Source: Paraphysomonas bandaiensis (taxonomy: Eukaryota; Protista; Chrysophyceae). Taken from it: a stretch of DNA of 64,000 nt. The notes below the pieces were generated by a model, which had not been told where the DNA came from, did no database searches, and was given only the letters and a program-made list of their open reading frames with translations. Position 1 is the first letter of the stretch. The number at the start of each line of letters is the position of its first letter. The DNA lies in contig CBFFRP010000433.1 in assembly GCA_965644295.1 (NCBI GenBank), positions 186,001-250,000 on the forward strand, given 5' to 3'. Below are positions 2,162 through 23,733 of the stretch, in pieces. Position numbers and translations under genes: made by a program.

Positions 2162-3755
2162 TCACAAAATTTCATTTCGGTATTCGTACCCGATGTACGG
2201 CTTAGCGTCATCATCAGAGCTATTGATATCATCACTCCATTCTACACGATCACGTCTCTTGGCTATGGATGAGAAGTTTGTTTCTGGGCATGTGCAGTGC
2301 TCTAGCAACAAGTCATATACAGAATCTTAAGAATAATCTTTACCTTGCAAACAATCAACTAAATATGGGTACACATTCTCCATTGCAACTGAGTGGAAAT
2401 CAAACTTCTCAAATATTCCACTATTAACCGCATCACGAATTCTTGAATGAATAGTACATTGGTATTCATTTGGGTCTACGTCATAAATCATAGGCTGCAA
2501 ATAGTAGCCTCTTTCAATGCTGTATGTATCCGGATTTAGTTCAAAAACTTTGTTTTCCTTATCAAAATGGACCTTTTTCAATCCAGAACGACAACCTCGT
2601 ATGCGATTCCATTGTGAAGCCAATGGATGGTAAACACAGTACCCATCTACAGATAATAAGTACTACATACATCATCTTCAGATTCGTGGTACCTGTATCT
2701 TTTACAATCTCACGAATTTTGCGATCGTTTAAATCAGACATATCACGCAGTTCATCCATACGTCTCTCGCATCGTCGTACCCATTTTAGTGGCAGAGGTG
2801 TAAATCCGCAACTTGAATTCATATTTTGCACACGTATTGCTGCATGCTCACTTGACGATATGAACTGTGAGAGGGCAAAGTCCGCAATATCTGCTATGGC
2901 AACATTAACACGACACTCGAAGTATTGTTTTGAGTAGTCAAGTAAATTTTCTACAGTTTGTCGTGCATCATAAACCGCCTTCATGTCTTCACGTGAAACT
3001 CTCATGTGCAAAATATCTCCTTTTCGAAGGTGTAGCAAGTCCCATGGCGAATTCACATTAAGATATTGTAGATTTAGTCGTACACGGGGATATACTGTAT
3101 CTTGAAATACCATGCTCAGTGTTAGTTCTTTGAAAGGATTTGTTTCAAAGAGAGCACAAGTATGCCTGTCAACATATTCGGGTCGACGAAGGCAGCTTTT
3201 TAAGTGGCGAATAGAACAATTTCGGGATCGGACATAGGGCCCATGAAGGTACGGTTTGTTTCGTATAGGTCGCCGGTTAAAGTGTGTAGTCAATGTAGGT
3301 TGCGTAATTCGACGCTGATTTACCACAGGTGTCGACGTTTTGCTTATAATTCGGTTCAGCGAAGGCTTGGGTAACATAAATTGCAAGTCAACAAATATAC
3401 GAGGCATATACATTGTCAGAGTTTCAATAATACGTTTTAGTGCTGAAGTTATTTTTGTCCTCTTCGGTTTGCTCTTTTTCCCCCAATTTTCATCTAGATC
3501 GAGCTGCATTGCTCGTATGTCGTCGATTGTTCCATTGCACGGCTCCTCCTTCGGCATCTCTCGAGCCATCTCGACGCCACGCTTTAGCCAGCTCTTGGCA
3601 ATGAATGATAGGTGTTGGTCAATTGTCTCTAAATCTTCATCACCCAAATCCAATAAGTCTTCCATCTTTCGGACTCCCATTCTGCGCAAGTGCTGCAGTA
3701 ACTCATCATTAGGCAGACACTCCCTCATAACATTCTCTTTTTTACTTTTATTCAT
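2162..3755 (-). CDS. Hypothetical protein with tentative SAM-like helical repeats; 3' part interrupted (possible pseudogene)
   Basis: 397-aa ORF with segments such as LRRMGVRKMEDLLDLGDEDL and LQYLNVNSPWDLLHLRKGDI. Protein-like sequence continues in another frame (2623-2327) and past an in-frame TAA to 2162. Confidence 0.4.
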
Positions 3756-3936
3756 GATATATACTTAAATTAGACACTATATGATTCTTGTGATCTTGAA
3801 CACTTCCTCGATAGCAATAAAAGCCAACACTGACTCGTCATAGAGTGTTGTAGAGTTCTGTTTATGGTATCTTTCTCCATTTCCGTAAAATCAGTGTAGC
3901 TTTCCGCAATATCTTCAAACCACATATCGGCAGTCT

Positions 3937-4375
3937 GCATCTTATTTATTCGGAAATAAATTGAAGCAAAATTCTTCTATATAAATGCAATACAACTACG
4001 GCTGGAATACAGATAATTGTTGTCTCAATATTAGAGGCATTTTAGAACAAAAATATACGAAGGATATCGATACGCCAGTTTCCTGGAAACTGATCTGTAT
4101 ATATATGTAGTGGAATACGTAGTTGGAAGGACTACTGTATTAATGAAATACTCAGCTGTATTCTTAGTATACGTTGTTGATTCGTTGTGTTTGTCCCAAT
4201 ATTAGAGACGGGGGTAGCAGTGCGACTTGAACATCATCGTATGCATCTTATTTTTCGGGAATAAATTGAAGCAAAAAGCCTCTATATTAGTGATATACAA
4301 CTACAGCAGGAATACAGACAATTATTGTCTCAATATTAGAGGCACCTTGGAAGAAAAATATACAAAGGAGCCGGA
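3937..4375. repeat. Diverged ~130-bp direct duplication (about 3937-4070 and 4243-4375)
   Basis: Both copies read gcatcttattt..cgg.aataaattgaagcaaaa..tacaactac..ggaatacaga.aatt.ttgtctcaatattagaggca. Confidence 0.75.
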
Positions 4376-5506
4376 TGCCGATAGATCATGATATGACACA
4401 CATCCTCATAGCTAGCTATGCATATGCTATGAGCCATACATAGATGATGATGAACAAAGTAACAGGCAGCAATATCGCCTATTTCTAATAAGTAGACTAT
4501 CATTACAAGAGAAGCTGAACTAATTTGATATCGCTCATAGTTATGTTCACGAACATGTCTTTAGCAACCAGTCAAGAATACACTGCATAGGCTCATGCAT
4601 ATTTATGTCTACACAAGTCTCAGTGATACAGTCCTGAACCCAGTATATGTTTATATAAACAACTCTTAGCTTTACTTATGTCTAGATATGCTATGAGAGA
4701 CACGTATAAACATGTAGATCATTACCTTCTTTTGACGCATTAGACGAAACATACTTCTTATAACTTGAATTCATTTCCACCTTAATCCTGATTTATTAGT
4801 ACTTTACAAGAAGTTATCATTCTTAATCTAATTTAGTGTATATGGCTAAGCCATGTAATTGAGAATCAGGTGTGTCTTGCAGTTTATAGATTTCCCAGAG
4901 CAAACACTCCGCAGTCTCTCTAATTAACGAATTGTGATCTTAGTTTCCTAAACACTTGTCAGATGCATAAATATAAACCTTGCAATCAATTTAAGCTACC
5001 TACCAGTGGTGCTCAGAACATTTTTTAGACGAGTTTAGTCTAGTTAGCACAAATTGAATCTGAGGAACATTTGCTAAAAAGTATCATATTAACTATTAAC
5101 TATTCAATGTTATAAGTTATGTGGTGTGTAAAAAACGTAAGTATACACAAATAGTCCAACCGATAAAATGTAGTGGTCGTATTGCTCTAGACTTATATTT
5201 CAATTGGAGTCATTGGGGTGTACCTCTCTACCAATAAGGTTCTTGATAGATTATATATGCCTGGCACTTGTATGCTTCCAATCGACTCTCTGGTAGCTGT
5301 CACAATTAAGAACGAATTGGTACAATATGTCGTCTAAGCAGAAACGAAAGTTTATAAATGACGCATAAGGCAGAAGAACACAAAAAATTTAGCAGTAGGT
5401 TGTTGGATTAGAGTTATAGTGCAACGCTGAAATAAACTACCCGTTAAGCAACATTAAGTCAGCACGCAACTAAAGTAAGCAAAGATAACTACAACTGGTC
5501 CCTCGT

Positions 5507-6310
5507 TTACTTTCCGCTGCCCTTCTTGCGCTTGAGCATCTTGGCGTAGAACTCGAGTTCCTTGCCCTCAAGGATGTAACCGTCGCAACGACCAGACTGG
5601 CCAGGGCGAGAAGAGATACAGGCCAAAAGACGACCAGAGCTGAATGCATCATCAAGAGCGGGGTCTAGAGTGCGGGTCTTCTGTCTCTCAGCGAGCTTTC
5701 TCTCAAGACTGCGAGACTTCTTAACAGCAGTCTAAATACAAACAAATAACATTAAATTAAAACTTCTACTATGTTTGATATTTTATACCTCCTCCTCGGC
5801 GGCGCCAGCCTTCTTAGCCTTCTTGACACCAACCTTGACACCGTAGTGCTGCTCGTACCAGGCACGGAATGGGGTGGCATCGATCTGAACAATAGAGTTC
5901 TTGACGAGGGTTTTGGTACGCACCAACTCGTTGTTAGAAGCGTTATATACGACATCCAGGACACGGGTCTTTCTGGTGCACACTACACACACAAAACATT
6001 TACCAACCTCAAGATAATTAACAACCGCATTTAATACCTTCACTTCCCCAAGAGAAGTTTCCAGAATCGAGCCTCATGGCACGGAACTTGAGGTTTCCAC
6101 CTCTGCAACGCACGGGGTGGATTCTCTGAGGTCCAAGCTTTGTGTTGGCAGGGGGTCTGCCGAGCTCATACTGCCTCTTCTTCTTAAGGTTGGCTTTTCT
6201 GCCACCAGTAGCTCGGCGTTTGTGTCTGCTATCACGAGAAATACCTAACCAATACAACAAACAAAGAAAATTAGAATATCACTACCAAGTTTTACTACTT
6301 TCTCACCCAT
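5507..6310 (-). CDS. RPS8: 40S ribosomal protein S8 (eS8), 4 exons (6310-6307, 6244-6038, 5982-5789, 5731-5507)
   Basis: Spliced product [86 protein letters not shown]. All introns are GT-AG. Confidence 0.98.
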
Positions 6311-7862
6311 ATTCAAGCTATCTCTTTTCCAACAATGAAATAACTTACATTAACATGCATTCCCACTACCATCAGAGGAGTGGTAAGAAATAATCTCAGA
6401 GCCACACCACAAACATAAAAAAAAATATAGTTAGAGTAACAAATCTCAAAGGGACAATTATTTTCAGTTTGTTATCTATATATTATTCAATATTTTATTA
6501 TGGAAAGTTGGAATTCCATAATTTTTAGATTTAAACCATTAAATACCAGGAAATGTTTGTGTAAATAGTAGGTTTTTTATGTAAGTTAACGTAAAATCAA
6601 TCTGATTAGATGTGGACATACAGTATCTATCGTCGCCTATGCAATTCTATGTACATGTATCTCATACTTAAGTCACCTGCCCTGTTATGATATCACCATA
6701 ACTATCATCTCTGGATATATCCTGAAGATAACAGACAACACTCAGCTCTTATCAACTAAAGGGGGTGTCCCATAACAAGAGCATGTCATAGTGTAGCAGT
6801 TAAGCTAATTAAGCTACTAGTATCCCGGAATATATATATATATGAGGTACGTGGACATTATTCATACTCGAAGTACGGCCCGTTTCAGGGCTTGAGATGT
6901 TAATAATGCTTCGAGATGAAAGAGAAGCTGCGTCTGACTCTAATGGGAGTTGGGTGCTTCAGTCAAGCGATCAAAGACTAGATAAGAGCAGTTTTAATAC
7001 TAGTACCTTCTTATATTTATAATAAATAAATAACTTTTAAAGTGTTATCTGTTATTCTAGTCAAGTAGTTTAGGGCCGACCTTTTCATTTCTTTAATAAG
7101 TATCACTAGTAGAAAGGGTGTACAGTAGCTTTACACTGCGGCCAAATAAATAATAAATGATTCAAGACCGCAATCGTCGTTACGTTACCACACCCAAAGG
7201 GTCACAGAACACGTCAGCAACACATGATTGAAACATAGAAACACAAGTCGAAAACCGCTGGTTCTCTATTATCGATTACTAGGTGTAACGAAGAGACCTT
7301 ACTCATCCCAGACGTCTACCTCTCCCACAGTCCCTTCACAAGTGGAAAAAAACGCTACGGCACAGCCTCCGTCTCAGGCTAAGTACACTCGACTAACAAA
7401 TTCAGAATCCTGTGCCTCCACAACGTCCTGCACTTCCAGGTTCCAGGGCTCACTCCCATAGAGATCTTCTCTCAAGTTTCATAGCGTTCTTATGTAGTAG
7501 GATAGGAGAACTTGTACTAGTTAATTACAGGTAGAAATCTATCTGCCGTGAATAGTTTTCATCTAGCTACTTATTTGGAGCTTATTCTCGACGCCTATTG
7601 CAAATACTAACACTTCATAAATACTAGACACTAAGAAACTAAGAAAGGGAAAATTTAGCTGCGAAGTTAAACTGTTGTAGTGTGTAGAATGTTTATCTCT
7701 ATATATCTATGGTATTAAAAGTTTACTTGTGTTCTTATTACATTGGTGATAAGTGTCTTCCTTTTTTTCTAGTCATTTGGGCTGATCACAGTTTATTCGT
7801 TTCATATAAGAATTATTAATATTATGTACTACTGCTATATATAATGACGAGTGAACTAATGG

Positions 7863-10800
7863 CTAGAACTCTTCCTCTTCCATTGTTCTTCCAGTTATTT
7901 CATAAAACTGCTCTTCTCTGGCTTGAAGACAGGCCATCAGCCTTCTAACTTCATCTTTTAATACTTCATTTTCCTGCACTACTTCATGATACATTCCCTG
8001 CAGGCCATCAAGTTCTTCGCTGAGGGAAGAATTTGCAGCAAGTAGGTTAGCCTGATTAACTTCTACCTACAGATAACAATCACAAGCATATTAGTTCTAT
8101 TGAAAAAAATAAACAGCTGATAATAATAGATTTGCATCAAAATATAACAAATCATATTCACACCTCCTTCAGTCCCTCCGTAAGCGTGGACAGCATATTG
8201 TCTTTCCTGTCAACATTCTCTTGTAGCCTATCAACTTCACTCTGAAGTTGTTTGTTGTCACTTTCTCGTCTCTTGAGTTCTGCCTGTAGCTGGGCGACTG
8301 TGGAAAGGGCTGAAATGCCGTTTGACTGGTTTTGACTTTGGATTGTGCTTGACGAACTAACGATAGCTGTAACATCAGCAGAATTGCTAGTCGTTACGCT
8401 CCCACTCGACCCGCCGCCAGATAGCCTACACAACAAAAACGAAGACAAGTACTTCATGAGTAGGAACAAAGAGAAATAGATATCAATTGTTTGGGAACTA
8501 TTGTATTCCAAAATACATACAGAACGAATGATATTAACCTAAACACACTGACAACACCATACTTGGATTTACTCGGCTTCGTGACATGCTGCTTTAATAT
8601 GTGAAGCATCTGAGAAACCCCCTCTAGCACTGGGTCAGCAGGCTTTGCTACTACTCTCTCCGTCGACGAAACTAGCTTCTCCCGAGGTACTCCTGCGAGA
8701 ATATCCTCAACTCGACTAGATGACAAACGACTATTTCCAGCGGGTGGCCCAATAGAGCGACGGGCATACATGGCTTTGGGAGACATCGACTGTTTCGGGG
8801 TGATACTTTTACGCTTAGAAATATCGGCAAAGAAGTCATCATCACCACCACTCTCACTTTCGTTCGTGTCATTGTGTTGGTCCTCCGAGCCCGAATCACT
8901 TCCATCATGTGTAGTTTCCCCTATTCCCTTTTTTGAATTCATGGTATCTGTGTTCGCAGAGGCGACCTGGACGTCAATGTCGGTCAAATCTGATGCACTT
9001 TTAGACTGTTTTACGGGTGGGCTTCCATCATTCGATGATTTTTTTACTGCAGTATGTGAAGGGCTTCTATTCTGTGCACTTGGTGTTGCAATCACTTTAC
9101 TGCCCGTTTTCTTGGTAGCTTGTCTAGGGCTGTTCGAATTCCGTGGTGACGACGTTCTTCGGGACGGACCTTTCAGCCTCGATATACCACTTGGCCTTTT
9201 GTCCCTAGCAGCTTTCGCCTCTGCTTCTTGCTTCGCTTGGGCTTCACCTTTCAGAATTAACCTTTCCATGTGATCTATCATCTGTAAAGATAAGTTGCAA
9301 TTACACGATACTACTGACAATAGGATGTGAAAATCTTACTTCAAGCATGAGCTGCTGGTTGTCCTCTGGTTCATCATCATCAGCCCCCTTTTTCTTGGTG
9401 GTCTGCATCATTGACTCCATATCTGCTAGCTTCGCTTTTAGTTGCTCTATTTCCACTCTATAAGCCCGTAAAAGTGTCTTATCATCCATTGTCTCATTTA
9501 CTCCAGCTTCCATCTTGATTCGCTTCGCCCTGGTGGCGAACTTCAACGTATTAGAAGTCTCCTCCACACATCGGATAGTTGGGGATATTGTACATATGAT
9601 GGTGATGAGAGCATTTCCCGATAGTGCGGTTTGCATAATCCTGAATGTTGAACACAACTTAAACCGTGCAATCACATATGGGGCATAAGGTAAAATACCT
9701 CGTCAATTTTGAGTCCCTATATGGTAGATGCTGCTTCTTCCGAGATCCGCCTTCTTCCTCACCAAGGCGATGTATAATGGTGGATAGCGTTAGCAAACTT
9801 TGATTTATATGTTTTGCCTCACGAGCCCGCACTCCCTTGCTATTTGTCATTTTTGCGTTCTCGGATCCAGCCAAGTCCACAAGGTTAAGGGTAGACACTC
9901 TAACAGGATCACCTATAAACATATCAGACCAAACTGGTGCTACACATACATCATGAGTTACCTGCAGTAGCCGAAAGTGCTTTGGACTCAATAATGAGTT
10001 TGAAAAGCGTGTGCGCTCGAGAACTTTTATCGTTCATATCTGTGGTGCCAACATGTCGATGCGCTTCTCCCCCTTGCAACAGCGCAATAACCTACAAAGT
10101 CACCCATTAAACACAAATATACATATTCATAACTGATAGCTGTCAACGCTGTGACATGAGAAAATACACAAGCTTGCAACACCTGGGCAGGATTCATCAC
10201 TACTTGCTCTTTCACACCACTGAGGACGATGCCAAGCTTAGGGTCCTGTTGAATCTTTATCTGTGTGCTGGACTCAGGATTGAGCAAATCATGAACCTAA
10301 GGCATAACATTAGTAAGAGTTCATGTGATATTTCATGTATCAACCGTTTCATTGTATATTTCCAGATATGATACTCTAAAGAGAAACTCCCTATCTCTGT
10401 ATTCTGAAATACATTCGAAACAATCGTATATAGCTTGTGGAATCAGTCCTGGCTGCTTAGCTGTTCCGTTCATCGTAAACGTCTTACCACTGGATGTCTG
10501 CAAGTCATATATATCAGCCAATAGTAAGTTAAACAAGCGCATATAACGAGAATGTGTACAAGTGAAAGGCATGTTCCTACCTGCCCGTAGGAGAATACAG
10601 AGCAATGATAGCCTTGCATGGCTTTATCCACTGTTTTCTTAACAATGCAGTTAAATATCATGTCATTTGTATGCTCTGGGTAGAACAGATGGTCAAAAGC
10701 GTAGGACATAGGAGGCGATAACGTCTCTGAAGTCTGGCGAAGTGATACAGAGTTCCGCTTTGGAATTGTGGAGGCATCCTGAGTGATTGTGTTGTTCTCC

Positions 10801-16496: not shown

Positions 16497-18825
16497 TCAT
16501 ACTTCATTATCCTGCAGAGGCGGCGGGCTGTATTCAGCTGAGAGCTCCGTACTGCTGTTGTTATTAGCTACGCTCTTGGTAAGGGGCTTGGGATGCAGCT
16601 TGACATCTTTAACTGGGCGAGAGGTCCAGGGAGTTTTGCTAGCTTCTTCAACTTGCTTGAGCTCTGCTGCGCTAAACTGTAGCAGCAAAGCAAGGACAGG
16701 TACCAAGGCATCTTTCTCTGTCGAAGCAGCAGGAAAACTCATATACTACAATGAAAACTCACATCAGACTAAGTATGTACTAAATATATATTATTCATTC
16801 ACCTGTAGAACCACATTTTTCAAGTAATCCATATTTACTCCCTCACGCCTTGCCATTCGTCGTAGTTCAGATAACTCCCCGACTGCCCTAGTATGATTCT
16901 GTTGGAGTCGAGCCAAATCTAGATCCTTCGCTGCCAAAGCTGTTTGAAGCTGTTGGAATGCTAGTTCCCTTGTATCCCTGCATAGATTTAGAACCGGTTA
17001 CGCTGTTTCAGTCATTGCAAGGTGAACACATACTTGCTAGCACCAATGGACGCCTCTCTTGAGGCCTGAGACTGCGCTAATTCAAATATCTTCCTCTCGC
17101 TTGGCCTCCCCGATGCGATCTCCTCCTGCAATTTATCCACCTTGTCCTTCAGTAGACGAATTTCTTCGTCCCTTTCGGATACTAAAACCCGAGCCGCTGC
17201 ACTCTTTTTGGCACATTCAGCCTGCGCTTCTTCAATCTGTTTGGAAGTAGACTCTTTCAATACCTTCAACTCTGTCTCGTGGTTGCTCTTCAAATCCGAT
17301 ATTGTTTTCGACATTTCATCTTTCATAGCATTGTGCTCTCTTATCCGCTCTTCTAATCTTGCCTCCCCTTCTGATATAGTGGCCTGTAGGGCAGTTACAC
17401 GCTCCACAGCTTCTTCCATCGCTTTGGTCTTCTCGTTTAGCTCTTCTCTTACCGACTCAAGCTCAGACTCTACAGTTGCAAGCATGGCCGTGCGCAAGGC
17501 ATGATTCGTCTCTGCAGTTGACAGCTGATTCTGCAGCCGAGTCACCAAAGAGTTTGCTTCATCTAGTTTCGTTTCCGCCTCAGCAAGATGTTCTTTGTTC
17601 TCCACCATGCGCACAAGCTGGCCCTCTGCCCTTACCCTGTATTCCTCTAGGTCTTTTACACGACGACTAAGTTCCTCTTTACTTGCTAGAGCCGACTTCA
17701 AATCTTTCCTAAGAGCACCAAGAAGAGCCTCCTGTTCCGCTTTGAGTAGAGCACCAGCATTGTTATTCCTTTCAAGTTCTCTGACTTTGTCCTTCGCCTT
17801 CTCACACTCTTCCTTCATTAATTGATGGGCTGATGTAAGCTCTTTTATCTCCGATTTTAGGCTTTCTACCATCGCAGTCTGAGCTGCTGATGTTGTCTCC
17901 TTTGCGGCAAGCACCTCTTTCTCCTTATCAACTTTCATTTGCTGCATTTTGTAGAACACAAGGTCTTCTTCTCTCCCCGTCTTCTCCGCCTCTAACTGCT
18001 TCTCCAATTCTTCTATTTGGCCTACCTTTTCTTCTACACTTACTTCGAGGTTGTGAATAGTACTCCTGAGGGAGCGCTCAGTACCTCGAAATTTGTCGTT
18101 TTCCTCTCTCAAAGAGTCTACCTCTGCTCGCAGTGATTCACATTCTTTTTGTGAGCGCTAAAAGTATCAAGACAACAGTTAATTTACGTATCCAGTATGG
18201 CACATTGCAAGTAAGCACACATACATGCATGATCATGTATTGAACAATATCATATCAAGTCACAGTATGCATAGCTCACCTCCAACTCATCTCTTAGTTC
18301 ATCTAGCTGCTCAGATGAAACGGTACTAACTTGGTCAGATGTAGCACTCATATTTCCAGGCCCAGAGTCCTTATCACGAGCTCGTAGTTCTGCTTTTAGC
18401 GCAGACACCTCACTCTGATGCTCATGCTTCAGAGACCGCAGCTTGTCTTCCAAGTCCAATACGTGCGACTTCTCGGAATTCAGTTGATGCAACCAGGCAT
18501 CTTTGACCGTATCAATATCAACTACGTCATTATTACTAGCGAATCCTGGATCAGAAATAGATGCTCGTAGAAGATCAAGCAATAGATTTCTATCCTGTAC
18601 CAATTGCTTTTGTTTTTTTACTAGCTCCTGACCCTTGCTCTCCATCGCCTGCATTCTCTTATTTAATTTCATACATAAATGAAGTAATTCCTCTTTTGGT
18701 ATATCATTTGGATCATTTTCAGTCTTAGTAGCGGGTTTATTACTATCCATTCCACCAAATATAGATGAAAAATAATTCCCCCCACTAGCACTCTTATTCT
18801 CTGCTTTCTTTAATGAATCTGACAT
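16497..18825 (-). CDS. GRIP-domain golgin (long coiled coil plus C-terminal GRIP)
   Basis: Heptad-rich exons. Spliced C-terminus REGVNMDYLKNVVLQ|YMSFP..EKDALVPVLALLLQFSAAE fits the GRIP consensus. Confidence 0.87.
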
Positions 18826-19405
18826 ATGATTAATCGATATATGAAAGTTAATTAAACAAATACTAGATAGATAGAATGAATCTCATGAATGATGAAGGTT
18901 AGAGATTGATAATCAAGAGATACTAACATACACCTGCAGCAGTGCTTTGTATGATGCCCCTCCGCTGCGACTGAAAACTGTGTATATATATACAGTAGAA
19001 GGACTATTTTGCCTAATAGTTTACAAAAATCATATATTTTTTTGAAAATATGGGTATATATTATACTCTATTGATAAAATCTGGATATTATAAAGAAAAC
19101 ATTCAATATATTATGAAAAATCTCTGTTCGTGTTGTTTACCCCATTTTCAGCCTCACTGAGCAGAGTGGGCATGTCATGTATGGATGTATATGTCCATAT
19201 GGACTGTGTAGTAGTACTGCTGTAGTGTACGTGTACTGACATATAGGAAGATCTCATACGAATATATCACTGCATTCTCACTGTACTTGAATGGTCCATC
19301 TAGAACTCAATGCATCTCTTGTGACTTCTCTCATATATATATACATACACTGATCTATATATACAATCACAGTGTTTATTCAATTAAACAATCCATAAGA
19401 ATCGG

Positions 19406-22044
19406 ATGTCTACTATCAAGTCCTGGACACCAATATATATAACCATAGGAAGTGCCTGTGGTTATATCCTTGTAACATCTTTAATCCATCAACCAGGATC
19501 ATCATTATGCCGATATGATTATGAATATGCTGAATGGACTCAATATGCTTTAATGGCAGCAATTGGTGCATTTGCTTTCTCTTGTCTTATACAACTCAGA
19601 CGATTAGTGTTTATTATGTTTTCTGGTAGTCATGACACTACATTTTATATCATACTCAGTACATTACTTATCAATATTCTTGGTGGTATGTCGGTTGCTT
19701 TGGAGCGTATAGAACATAACTTGTGTCATGATAATTTTGGGTAAGTTTTTGTTATGTTAGTTGCTATTTCTTATAATTTTTGGTGCATAGTGTTGTTACC
19801 TACGCAGCTAACTGGTGCTCGTGGACCATCACAGTACCATTGCTAATGTACACTGTGCTTGTACCTGAGTTTGGTAAGGCCCCGACTCCAACTGATGTCA
19901 AAGCCATTGTAACTATATTTCTTACCATTGTGTTTGGTTTTGCAATGCAGTTCAATGGTCTGCAACTCTTTGGTACTGTTATTTTTTTTATTCTCAGCTG
20001 CGTGACTTTCACTCTGGCATTATACTTCATGTATGTGTCCAATGCGGAAAGCAAGGAGCTATACAGTGAACTTGTTAATGCTAATTCGAATTTGTGCGGG
20101 GAGGAAAAGTTTCGATTAGATTTGAAGTTGGATCTGTCGGTTACTTTTGCAGTAGTGATGTGCTTTTTCCCTTTAGTCTATATTTTGGCAATGATTGGAG
20201 CTTTAAATCCAAGCACCACTCTCATGAGCTATCTTGTGTTAGATGTGGCTGCTAAGGGCTTTGTAGCCTTCACTGCCATGGACTCGCACCTGTCTCTGTT
20301 ATACTCGGTTAAAGCTGATCTAGCATTACAAGTCAAAGCCAATGCACGCAAGCGAGCATTCATTCGGTACATGTTCCACGAGACTCGCATCCCTCTTAAT
20401 GCTATTGCTATGGGTGTTGACTTTTTTGTTTCATCCGCGGGTAATGCTTTGAGTAAATCAGAAGGTAACGATGCTGTTTCGGCAAAGGAATCTCTGGACA
20501 CTATTGTTGCTGCGACTGATTACTTAGAAGAGGCACTTAACAGTTATCTGACCATGCAGCAAGTAGAGGAGGGTACTTTTGATATTGACTGCGAAGAAGT
20601 AAATTTAAAGAAATTGTGGGCAGAAATAGTGGATGACGTTTCGAAAAATCTGGACAAACGCAATCTTCAAGTGTTACAAAAATCGGGAGATCAGCTTCCA
20701 GAGAGTATATTTGCTGATCGTCGACAGTTGATGTATGCACTGAAAAGTCTTCTTTTTTGCGTCGCATCACGTTCTCACCCGGGAAGTGCAGTACAAGTGA
20801 CGACCTCAACTACTATTAAAGAATCTGTTAAAAGTGGCCCTCGAGGGGGCACTCAAGGCATATATTCTGTCGAGCTATCGTTTGATTCCTCAGGATGTAT
20901 CATATCTACTGAAGATCAAAGACATTTATTTGAAGCATATGGTACATTATTCACGGGGGATATGCTGGGGCAGTATGGTTCCGGACTATCGCCTGTGATT
21001 GCGAAAGAAATAATTTCTCTACACAATGGAACCGTTCATGTGTCGACCTCCTCTTCAGGCGGATTGGTGTGCACAGTGCGTATGAATCTACGAAGTGCTG
21101 GAAAGGATATGCTGCTGGAAAAACCCTCTAAGCGCCGCGCCCCCCATTACTTAGATTTATCAAAACTTCGCTCTGTTAGAGTGTCTGCTCGTGTTGGCAT
21201 TGCTTCACCATCTTCTCCCACAGCGAGTACTACCTCGTATCACCTGGGCCAATCTTTTAGCAATCGCGAGGGCTCTGAAAAATTAAAAACGTCAGCGAAT
21301 AATGGTCAGACCTCAAGCTCACCACATCACAAGTATACTTCAATATCGCAGAGTGAGCCGAACCACAGCGTGAATGTGGCTGATGAAAGTACAATAACAC
21401 ATCATCAGCCATCTATGGGAACTGGTAAGTAATGGAGTTGTGATTATATAAACATCCGTTTTTATCAATATTATGTTGTAGGAGTTGAGATGGTGGAATG
21501 GGATAAGAGGGATCTACCTGATGTGTCTGACCTTAGAGTATTATGTGTAGACGGTACGTGGAGTGTATAGTGATTAGCAGCATGTTTCTGATGTAATATT
21601 CTGTAGACACGCCTTCAAATACAAGAATGTTACAATGGCTCCTGAAGCAATTTAGTGTTAGTTCTATAGCTGCCACGAATGGATTGGAAGCTACATTGTT
21701 ATACCAAGAAAATCCAAGCCTCCACATTATATTTATGGATTACACGATGCCAGTTGTGGTAAGCGAAGCACTGTTTATTCTCTCCTTGTCATGTTAATTT
21801 GTTGTGATGACAGAATGGTATCGAAGCCACAAGAATAATTCGGAATAAAGGTTTCTTGGGTTGCATTGTTGCTGTTACTGGCAATGCTATGGACGATGAC
21901 GTGCAAGAATTTTTGGATGTTGGAGCTGATGCAGTTGTTACCAAACCAATGAAGCGAAATAAACTGGAGGCAATATTAGCGTGTTTTGTGATGTCACGAA
22001 CTCTAGGCGAAGCTCGTCACAATTTAAGGTCGCTGCAGCACTGA
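19406..22044 (+). CDS. Rhodopsin-histidine kinase-response regulator fusion (HKR-like), exons 19406-19740, 19791-21424, 21482-21553, 21607-21758, 21814-22044
   Basis: TM region has helix C-like YAANWCSWTITVPLLM, helix F-like MCFFPLVYIL and helix G YLVLDVAAKGF (DxxxK). H-box FIRYMFHETRIPLNAI and an HATPase-like region follow. Receiver: LRVLCVD|DTPSN..IFMDYTMP..VAVTGN..VTKP. Confidence 0.85.
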
Positions 22045-23733
22045 ATATCTTATTACTATTGATATAATCAGAGTAGTGACGATGGAACGAGCTGAGCGAG
22101 TAATCTCTGGGTTCTTAGTTGATATTGTATTAGAGATTACACTAGTTTTTGCAGAAGAGAAGTTCAGCAAAAACTGTATCAACGTAGTGCACACTGTTAA
22201 GTAGTTTGCGTTTTAATATTAGTTGTGCACTGAATCGTGTGGAGAATATTTGTGGTCAATATTTATGTATGGAGTAATGATTCGGACTTCGAAATTCTTG
22301 TGCTTATTGTCTTTTGCTCATTTTATACCTTAGATCGTTAGAGAAAAGTTAAGTCGTCAGACAGAATATTTATTAGTGCCTCTCATCGACATGAGTCTTT
22401 CTAACCTACTGAAGTAAAGGACACTTTCATTCCTTGTTTCCCTCGGCAAAAATTACTATATTATTGCATACACCATTGTGTCATTTCGCACAAAAGTCAT
22501 CACCAGCACAATTTTATTATTCTGATTGCAACCACTGATATCTTGAATCGTCATAATACTTCAGTTTTACAGATACACAACTTTACAGTATTTGGACTAC
22601 GCATTACTCTTTATCACATTGTACTTATCGAATAATACACTTTTATCCTCTTAGTAAAACGTATAGGTATGCTAACAGGTCTTCTATAAATTGCCCAGTT
22701 CTATTATCTAAAAAGAAATACAGCAGGCGCTAATAAGTTTGGGTTATGTTTCACGTTGCACTACTACTTCTGCGACAAGTAGAAAATTTCTTTAAACATA
22801 CATATATTCATCTGGGTTGTAATAATTAGATAGCCAGGCTATCCACTACACAAAATATTTCCCTGTTGTTATAAGTAATTAATTGATAGAAAAATAATAC
22901 TATGGTGGTACTAGTTTGACTTCATGCTACTTCTTTTATCTAGCTTGACTAGTTTGACCATGTAGCTACTCAGCTGGTGCAGATTTTAACGCCTATTGCT
23001 AATAATAAGACTTTCAATGTGATAATAGACGACCATATAATTAATTCACATGTTAGATATATATTCGACATTCTACATCCATGAATTCTAAAGCACTATA
23101 TCAGAATTACCACATTAAAGGCTATTAGTATAACCAGAAGTCGTACCACAGACTCTGCTGCTCAATTACATTCCTCATGTATATATGTATACATGGTATG
23201 TCGAAATTGTATAAAGAGTTCGGGAAGCGCTCCTGATTCTATAGACTGTGATATCTGCTATACTGTGACGTCTATAGGATATAGAGTGCATATATATATA
23301 TATTCAGATCAGACTATATGAATGGATCTTTGTAGGTGGAGGTGGGTTGGGTTGATGTACATGGAGGAGGGATGCATATAAAGATGATGCGTGGACATTT
23401 ATTGTACGTATGTTATACGTCAATATACAGTAACATATACAGGCAGCAGTTTCATATGTGTATGTGTATGTATATATACGTGTATGTTATATATGTACTG
23501 TATGGACTACGTACTACAGTACTGCTGTAGGCGTATGTGTCCTGTATATATGTATGTATACGTATATATATGGTATGTATATGTGCGTGTGTGCGTGTAT
23601 GTATGTATATATATATGTACGTATGTATGTGTATATGTTAGTTATGGTTGTTACACACATACATATACACACATACATAGACTCTTATCTCTCTCCTCCC
23701 TATCAACACACCTATGAATTAATAGTAATACAC

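Follow-up and report, generated by a model that had tools for sequence, protein, structure and literature searches.

A rhodopsin–histidine kinase–receiver gene with a degenerate ATP pocket in the colourless chrysophyte Paraphysomonas bandaiensis

The 64,000-nucleotide stretch of Paraphysomonas bandaiensis DNA analysed here (the window; contig CBFFRP010000433.1, positions 186,001 to 250,000) carries a real and expressed gene that fuses a rhodopsin to HisKA, HATPase and receiver domains. We favour, with modest confidence, the reading that its product is a light-sensing pseudokinase, which would act as a phosphate sink or modulator in the manner of RetS. Known histidine kinase rhodopsins (HKRs) share this layout; the interest lies in the putative pseudokinase and its counterion-swapped branch, the colourless host, the hidden size of the family and the virus-type copies.

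Gene structure and rhodopsin sensor

The reading frame stays open across five exons and gives, on spliced translation of the plus strand, 807 amino acids without an internal stop (Table 1). All four introns are GT-AG. In three RNA-type runs, each from a different study, single contigs span all four splice joints with no extra letters; a fourth RNA run contains two of the four joints. The exon model of the original prediction was thus correct at every joint, and its call of a nuclear stramenopile gene is borne out by the host. No guanylyl cyclase or other output domain follows the receiver: the stop codon comes directly after it, and the transcript ends about 230 nt further on. The upstream neighbour (17012–18825, minus strand), 580 nt away and divergent, encodes a long coiled-coil protein, with no link seen to the rhodopsin gene. 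An AT/GT-rich simple-repeat stretch lies 3′ of the rhodopsin gene at 23400–23700.

Table 1 Features of the rhodopsin–kinase gene, in window positions
Feature	Position	Strand	Source
Spliced transcript contigs, extent	19379–22287	+	runs X1–X3
Exon 1: TM0, helices A and B; Cys35 (19508), Cys107 (19724)	19406–19740	+	
Intron 1, 50 nt, GT-AG, phase 2	19741–19790	+	splice model and transcripts
Exon 2: helices C–G, linker, DHp, CA domain, Ser/Thr-rich spacer	19791–21424	+	
Rhodopsin helices C–G	19801–20289	+	Pfam PF01036
Helix G: Asp263 (BR D212) and Schiff-base Lys267 (20254–20256)	20242–20256	+	
Single unbroken predicted helix from helix G through linker to DHp helix 1, the putative signal path	20209–20445	+	model, H140–218, pLDDT mostly >80
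HisKA/DHp; His308 (20377–20379); H+4 = Ile312	20350–20574	+	
Degenerate CA (HATPase_c) domain; C435 codon 20758, S478 codon 20887	20668–21093	+	
Intron 2, 57 nt	21425–21481	+	splice model and transcripts
Exon 3: receiver start, first Asp of acidic pair	21482–21553	+	
Intron 3, 53 nt; split codon encodes second Asp of acidic pair	21554–21606	+	
Exon 4: receiver, phospho-acceptor Asp725 at 21738	21607–21758	+	
Intron 4, 55 nt	21759–21813	+	splice model and transcripts
Exon 5: receiver Thr753, Lys775, stop	21814–22044	+	

Domain searches were run exon by exon. Exon 2 matches Pfam Bac_rhodopsin (PF01036; E 1.6e-13, 51 bits, cut-off 24.6) and HATPase_c (E 4.8e-7), with HisKA just below cut-off (E 1.9e-5), and exons 4 and 5 match Response_reg, in line with the domains that the original prediction had named. 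Its by-eye alignments to helices C, F and G of bacteriorhodopsin (BR) proved correct, and the Schiff-base Lys is retained as it had claimed: Lys267 aligns in register with that of the solved rhodopsins 7zou, 8yel and 7w74. Feature searches of the ESM Atlas returned generic kinases only, and fold searches of the atlas returned generic rhodopsins.

The predicted structure of exon 2 (pLDDT 91) contains helices C to G, with helix G running unbroken through the H-box. Exon 1 encodes three hydrophobic segments, from which eight transmembrane helices had been suggested, and aligns with the N-terminal region of the natural paralog P0164 and of the family. Folded with the family alignment and standing in for the window's own joined protein, P0164 gives an eight-helix model (pLDDT 92) that superposes on solved rhodopsins with Z 19–24 and RMSD of 2.5–3.5 Å. 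Its best structural match is SrRhoPDE from Salpingoeca (PDB 7d7q, also 7cj3; for 7d7q, Foldseek E 3e-7, Z 24.3, residues 1–285, aligned from residue 1), TM0 and the helical linker included, although identity is 14% and the output of the window protein is a two-component module rather than a phosphodiesterase. The type-1 rhodopsin fold is thus indicated by the profile match of exon 2 and the structural matches of the paralog model, on which the window protein is predicted to have TM0 plus seven helices, eight in all.

In BR numbering, the retinal pocket keeps W86, T89, P186 and D212 (Asp263) and replaces R82 (N119), D85 (S122), D96 (T133), W182 (M235) and W189 (Y242). The window protein therefore lacks both the Arg at BR82 and an acid at BR85, and Asp263 on helix G is the only acid at its two counterion sites. 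Two cysteines recur in the family: of 59 rows, 51 have the one that follows TM0 and 52 the one ahead of helix C. Cys35 and Cys107, and Asp109 with them, are shared by about 88% of full-length family rows. This conservation points to a possible extracellular disulfide tying the TM0–A loop to the B–C hairpin.

The protein is not a lone divergent one: the genome has three paralogs, this gene included, and a search of 1.84 billion representatives recovered 258 clusters of the family. Named members are the Paraphysomonas proteins and four Mallomonas annulata proteins, the remainder being metagenomic. Pfam Bac_rhodopsin matches only 18 of 59 rows of a family alignment, and for this reason the family is annotated as plain kinases, the JGI name for relatives being 'signal transduction histidine kinase'; a warning that such a gene is easily taken for a plain hybrid kinase was well placed. 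Among about 150 aligned members, 150 of 152 have the Schiff-base Lys, 116 of 118 have Trp86 and only 4 of 115 have Arg82. An acid at BR85 without one at BR212 is found in 97 of 116 relatives and the reverse, as in the window gene, in only 8; one acid at either site is present in 110 of 116. The residue at 7.46 (BR D212) is Ser in 82 members, Asn in 27, Asp in 21 and Gly in 15. Cluster 5 of a 2026 rhodopsin network, uncharacterised, likewise has no conserved residue at 7.46 and may be the same family (PMC13739731).

The supply of chromophore bears on the sensor as well. An RPE65-family carotenoid oxygenase, present in the genome as a single copy (L029:1318–2988, contig C133), is a candidate source of retinal from prey carotenoids; a blh/BCD search of the genome had a silent control. 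Paraphysomonas is a colourless genus, and neither a chlorophyll-binding light-harvesting gene nor a phytoene synthase was found by exon-wise searches of the genome, whose absences are not proof. Two PF00494 matches were rejected as phytoene synthase, their translations reading as an isomerase–squalene synthase fusion and an NDUFAF6-like protein. The former (L053; contig C394:118497–119339 and upstream) joins isopentenyl-diphosphate isomerase to squalene synthase in one open frame, as read from its translation.

It is possible, if unlikely, that the protein is a pseudokinase whose rhodopsin-like domain senses a ligand, an ion or the membrane state, or does its work without retinal, which its host would seldom contain. 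The replaced R82, D85 and W182 and the failure to find carotenoid synthesis or light-harvesting genes would fit such a sensor, as would the requirement of Chlamydomonas COP5/HKR1 for ammonium chemotaxis (PMC11621555). However, a nearly invariant Lys combined with an acid at either counterion site is what one would expect if the Schiff base were protonated, and the RPE65-family oxygenase is present. For the light-sensing pseudokinase, the Lys register in profile and solved structures, the eight-helix model and the conservation of Lys and Trp86 speak in favour, whereas the missing Arg82, Asp85 and Trp182 make retinal binding less than certain and, with no phytoene synthase found, the retinal supply would rest on diet and on this candidate oxygenase.

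Replaced ATP-pocket residues in the window gene, its clade and its paralogs

Aligned to HK853, the CA domain carries the changes N376→S431, N380→C435, D411→S478, G415→I482 and G445→S512. Both Asn of the N-box are replaced (by Ser and Cys), as are the Asp and second Gly of G1 (by Ser and Ile) and the third Gly of G2 (by Ser). Despite these replacements the structure prediction still gives a CA fold, and does so at high confidence; His308 and Glu309 of the DHp domain are intact, and so is the D-D-D-T-K set of the receiver, phospho-acceptor Asp725 included. The HExxT/N transmitter-phosphatase motif is absent, with Ile312 instead of Thr/Asn at H+4. Two-component biochemistry assigns Mg binding to the N-box Asn and adenine binding to the G1 Asp, and losing both normally abolishes autophosphorylation. 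Judged by these residues, the kinase is probably dead, and ATP-dependent autophosphorylation is predicted to be absent. The original prediction of an H-box, HATPase-like domain and receiver behind the Lys, making up a divergent HKR without a cyclase, thus holds for the architecture, the domain order, the HATPase fold, His308 and the missing cyclase, but not for a working kinase. The gene has the build of an HKR without a cyclase but, having failed the catalytic-box test, should not be classed with the active HKRs.

Most of the family is different in this respect, with the N-box Asn kept in 87 of 109 members and the G1 Asp in 95 of 104. In quick, midpoint-rooted trees, whose node values are not bootstraps, rhodopsin and linker columns alone place the window gene in a clade (99) whose every row lacks the N-box Asn; kinase columns and one more member give a ten-row clade (100) in which the Asn is absent from all ten. 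Seven different residues occupy the N-box position in nine rows of this clade. The CA domain drifts faster here than in intact members: CA identity is 27% versus 49% at equal rhodopsin distance, the pairs not being independent.

The three copies of the rhodopsin kinase in the Paraphysomonas genome were recovered with protein and profile queries; a PF01036 profile search of the genome gave no match, its control being equally silent. Two of them lie head to head on contig C58 (140000–149999), at 2660–5546 of that piece on the minus strand and about 6103–8945 on the plus strand, and share two near-identical inverted stretches, one of 206 nt (97%) covering helices C–E and one of 370 nt (99%) covering the receiver, intron included. 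Set amid divergence elsewhere, these shared stretches suggest gene conversion. Both copies lack the N-box Asn, and the minus copy also has His changed to Tyr; in one of the two the G1 Asp is still present and an Asn stands immediately ahead of the N-box position. The N-box is intact in none of the rhodopsin kinases of this genome.

The nearest database proteins, P0001, P0164 and P0024, are 95–99% identical to the two C58 paralogs, P0024 being labelled MMETSP1103 (taxon 36769, genus Paraphysomonas, Chrysophyceae). P0001 and P0164, the consecutive MMETSP transcripts 21743 and 21744, combine exon 1 of the minus gene with the C-terminus of the plus gene. They are probably assembly chimeras across the shared repeats; an inversion swapping exon 1 between the paralogs, as P0001 might suggest, is less likely, because the two transcripts share their 5′ and 3′ ends via two near-identical repeats.

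Against this background, we consider it quite unlikely that the protein is an active, if atypical, light-regulated histidine kinase, as first predicted, in which His308 would autophosphorylate and pass phosphate to Asp725 and Hpt. The intact His308, Glu309 and receiver, the preserved CA fold, and the G1 Asp and displaced Asn of one C58 paralog leave some room for it, and some kinases with odd boxes retain weak activity, a point that also weighs against the pseudokinase. In the window gene, however, the replacements hit both Asn of the N-box, the Asp of G1 and two Gly at once, the N-box position varies widely across its clade, and no rhodopsin kinase of the genome has this box intact. In a further, improbable reading His308 is phosphorylated in trans, and the protein supplies the light sensor of an obligate pair formed with a paralog or a different kinase, comparable to the heterodimeric rhodopsin cyclases of fungi. 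Three paralogs with different losses, one of them His to Tyr, and a His that the clade has kept while its ATP site decayed would fit such a partnership, but all three lack the N-box Asn, which leaves no obvious active partner.

That the gene is a decaying relic of a photosynthetic ancestor's photoreceptor, as a colourless host and a degenerate ATP site might suggest, is very improbable: it is full-length, spliced and expressed in several studies; it is under selection, since amino-acid change is low where synonymous change has almost saturated; and seven further members of the clade, at 30–50% identity, share its anatomy, exon 1 and the position of intron 1 included, a conservation that largely refutes decay.

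Virus-type copies and their kinase motifs

An IMG/VR scan yielded an intron-free 706-aa family member on a catalogued viral contig (IMGVR_UViG_3300047476_002005; L048:4353–6473, plus strand). It has the Lys, the His, the N, G1 and G2 boxes and the receiver; its GC content is 25% versus 33% for its piece, and its contig neighbours are DVNP, RFC1, DUF7487 and S74 genes. This viral contig also carries a second, stand-alone Bac_rhodopsin gene (L049:15300–16007, minus strand; 235 aa, E 9e-23), which is separated from the rhodopsin kinase by about 9 kb. Further family members are found beside an intein-bearing Rpb2, glycosyltransferases and TspO (L085:3487–5868), beside ERCC4 and RNase III (L088:673–2955), beside Rpb6 and Rpb2 (L091:5595–7493) and, split into two ORFs (P0035), beside an AAA ATPase and GIY-YIG on an ERZ1426821 contig. 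For the Rpb2 of L091, human and yeast Pol II give similar scores, which exceed those of archaeal enzymes by no great margin.

These five contigs are gene-dense and intron-free, with a coding density of 0.87–0.96 versus 0.34 for the window, and are of giant-virus type, only that of L048 being catalogued as viral and the other four assigned from gene content. Where motifs were read, the virus-type members are kinase-intact. The tree covers four of the five copies, all but the split P0035: three group in a single clade of seven rows (98), and L048 stands apart. Two hybrid histidine kinases beside receiver-bearing genes in one giant-virus MAG (GVMAG-S-ERX555907-72; L051:5389–7179 and L052:5362–7068) were rejected as viral rhodopsin kinases, their two-helix sensors being non-rhodopsin.

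The viral rhodopsins known to us are pumps, channels and heliorhodopsins. Within the literature covered, from which subscription journals are mostly missing, we found no account of this rhodopsin–kinase family, of chrysophyte or viral HKRs, or of a viral rhodopsin with a kinase. A broader picture, which we put forward tentatively and with somewhat more doubt than belief, is that eight-helix rhodopsin kinases with no arginine and a single carboxylate form a large, separate family in chrysophytes. The branch with the window gene would have moved the counterion from helix C to helix G and given up catalysis, becoming a light-gated pseudokinase in non-photosynthetic grazers, and kinase-intact members would have been captured, perhaps more than once, by giant viruses as the first viral enzyme rhodopsins.

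A putative light input to a phosphorelay

Chlamydomonas Cop5/HKR1 and Cop6 and Ostreococcus Ot-HKR combine an eight-helix opsin, DHp, CA and receiver in one chain (PMC8006352; PMC12558739), as the window protein does, and the kinase of Cop5 may be non-functional too (PMC8006352). Unlike these green-algal HKRs and 2c-Cyclops, the window protein has no guanylyl cyclase, its ATP boxes are replaced, its host is a chrysophyte and it lacks the Arg at 3.42 that is conserved in nearly all characterised rhodopsin clusters (PMC13739731). Among the database hits, none was recognised as an algal HKR. Putative HKRs outside green algae, in Guillardia theta (clade C; PMC7714340) and the heterotroph Thecamonas trahens (HK4; PMC6324907), are likewise described as rhodopsin–kinase fusions, belong to other lineages and are uncharacterised; the surveys that describe them report none from stramenopiles. 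With such fusions reported from green algae, Guillardia and Thecamonas, neither the architecture nor the heterotrophic host is new.

When the fold of the cytoplasmic part is compared, the matches include the pseudo-histidine kinases RetS (Pseudomonas) and DivL (Caulobacter). RetS combines a degenerate HATPase domain, a kept H-box and a working, phosphorylatable receiver, and acts on GacS (PMC5992135); the window protein likewise has a degenerate HATPase domain, a kept DHp with its H-box and a receiver with its phospho-Asp. The likeness is a functional analogy only, for unlike RetS and DivL the protein has a rhodopsin sensor, one receiver and Ile in place of the HExxT Thr, which removes one RetS mechanism.

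The host offers many candidate targets. Its genome contains at least 51 receiver and at least 40 HATPase matches, a large expansion for a eukaryote, with only two Hpt genes and at least 20 other kinases whose N, G1 and G2 boxes are intact. These kinases and Hpt proteins as candidate partners, the intact receiver, selection on the gene and the RetS precedent, together with the replaced equivalents of HK853 N380 and D411, the N-box loss throughout the ten-row clade and the CA drift, are the grounds on which we prefer the light-sensing pseudokinase. In the mechanism we propose, the one RPE65-family oxygenase would cut retinal from prey carotenoids, and retinal would bind Lys267 with Asp263 as presumed sole counterion. 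Photoisomerisation would shift helix G and then the DHp dimer. Because the protein could not phosphorylate itself, its light state would act on others, changing either the uptake of phosphate from other hybrid kinases and the two Hpt proteins or their binding and damping: receiver Asp725 would serve as a phosphate sink, and DHp contact as a brake such as RetS applies to GacS. The output would be a light-dependent bias on the large phosphorelay network of a non-photosynthetic grazer, most likely affecting motility or daily timing.

To our knowledge, work on histidine kinase rhodopsins has been confined to green algae. The present family, with its hundreds of clusters that Pfam mostly overlooks, enlarges the known range of enzyme rhodopsins, and its natural counterion swap (helix C acid versus helix G acid, with no Arg82) offers material for studies of colour tuning and photochemistry. 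The virus-type copies suggest that giant viruses equip their hosts with a complete two-component receptor controlled by light. A rhodopsin pseudokinase, if true, would give light a new route into a phosphorelay, and it opens light sensing to direct tests in a colourless bacterivore that is widely used as a grazer in the laboratory.
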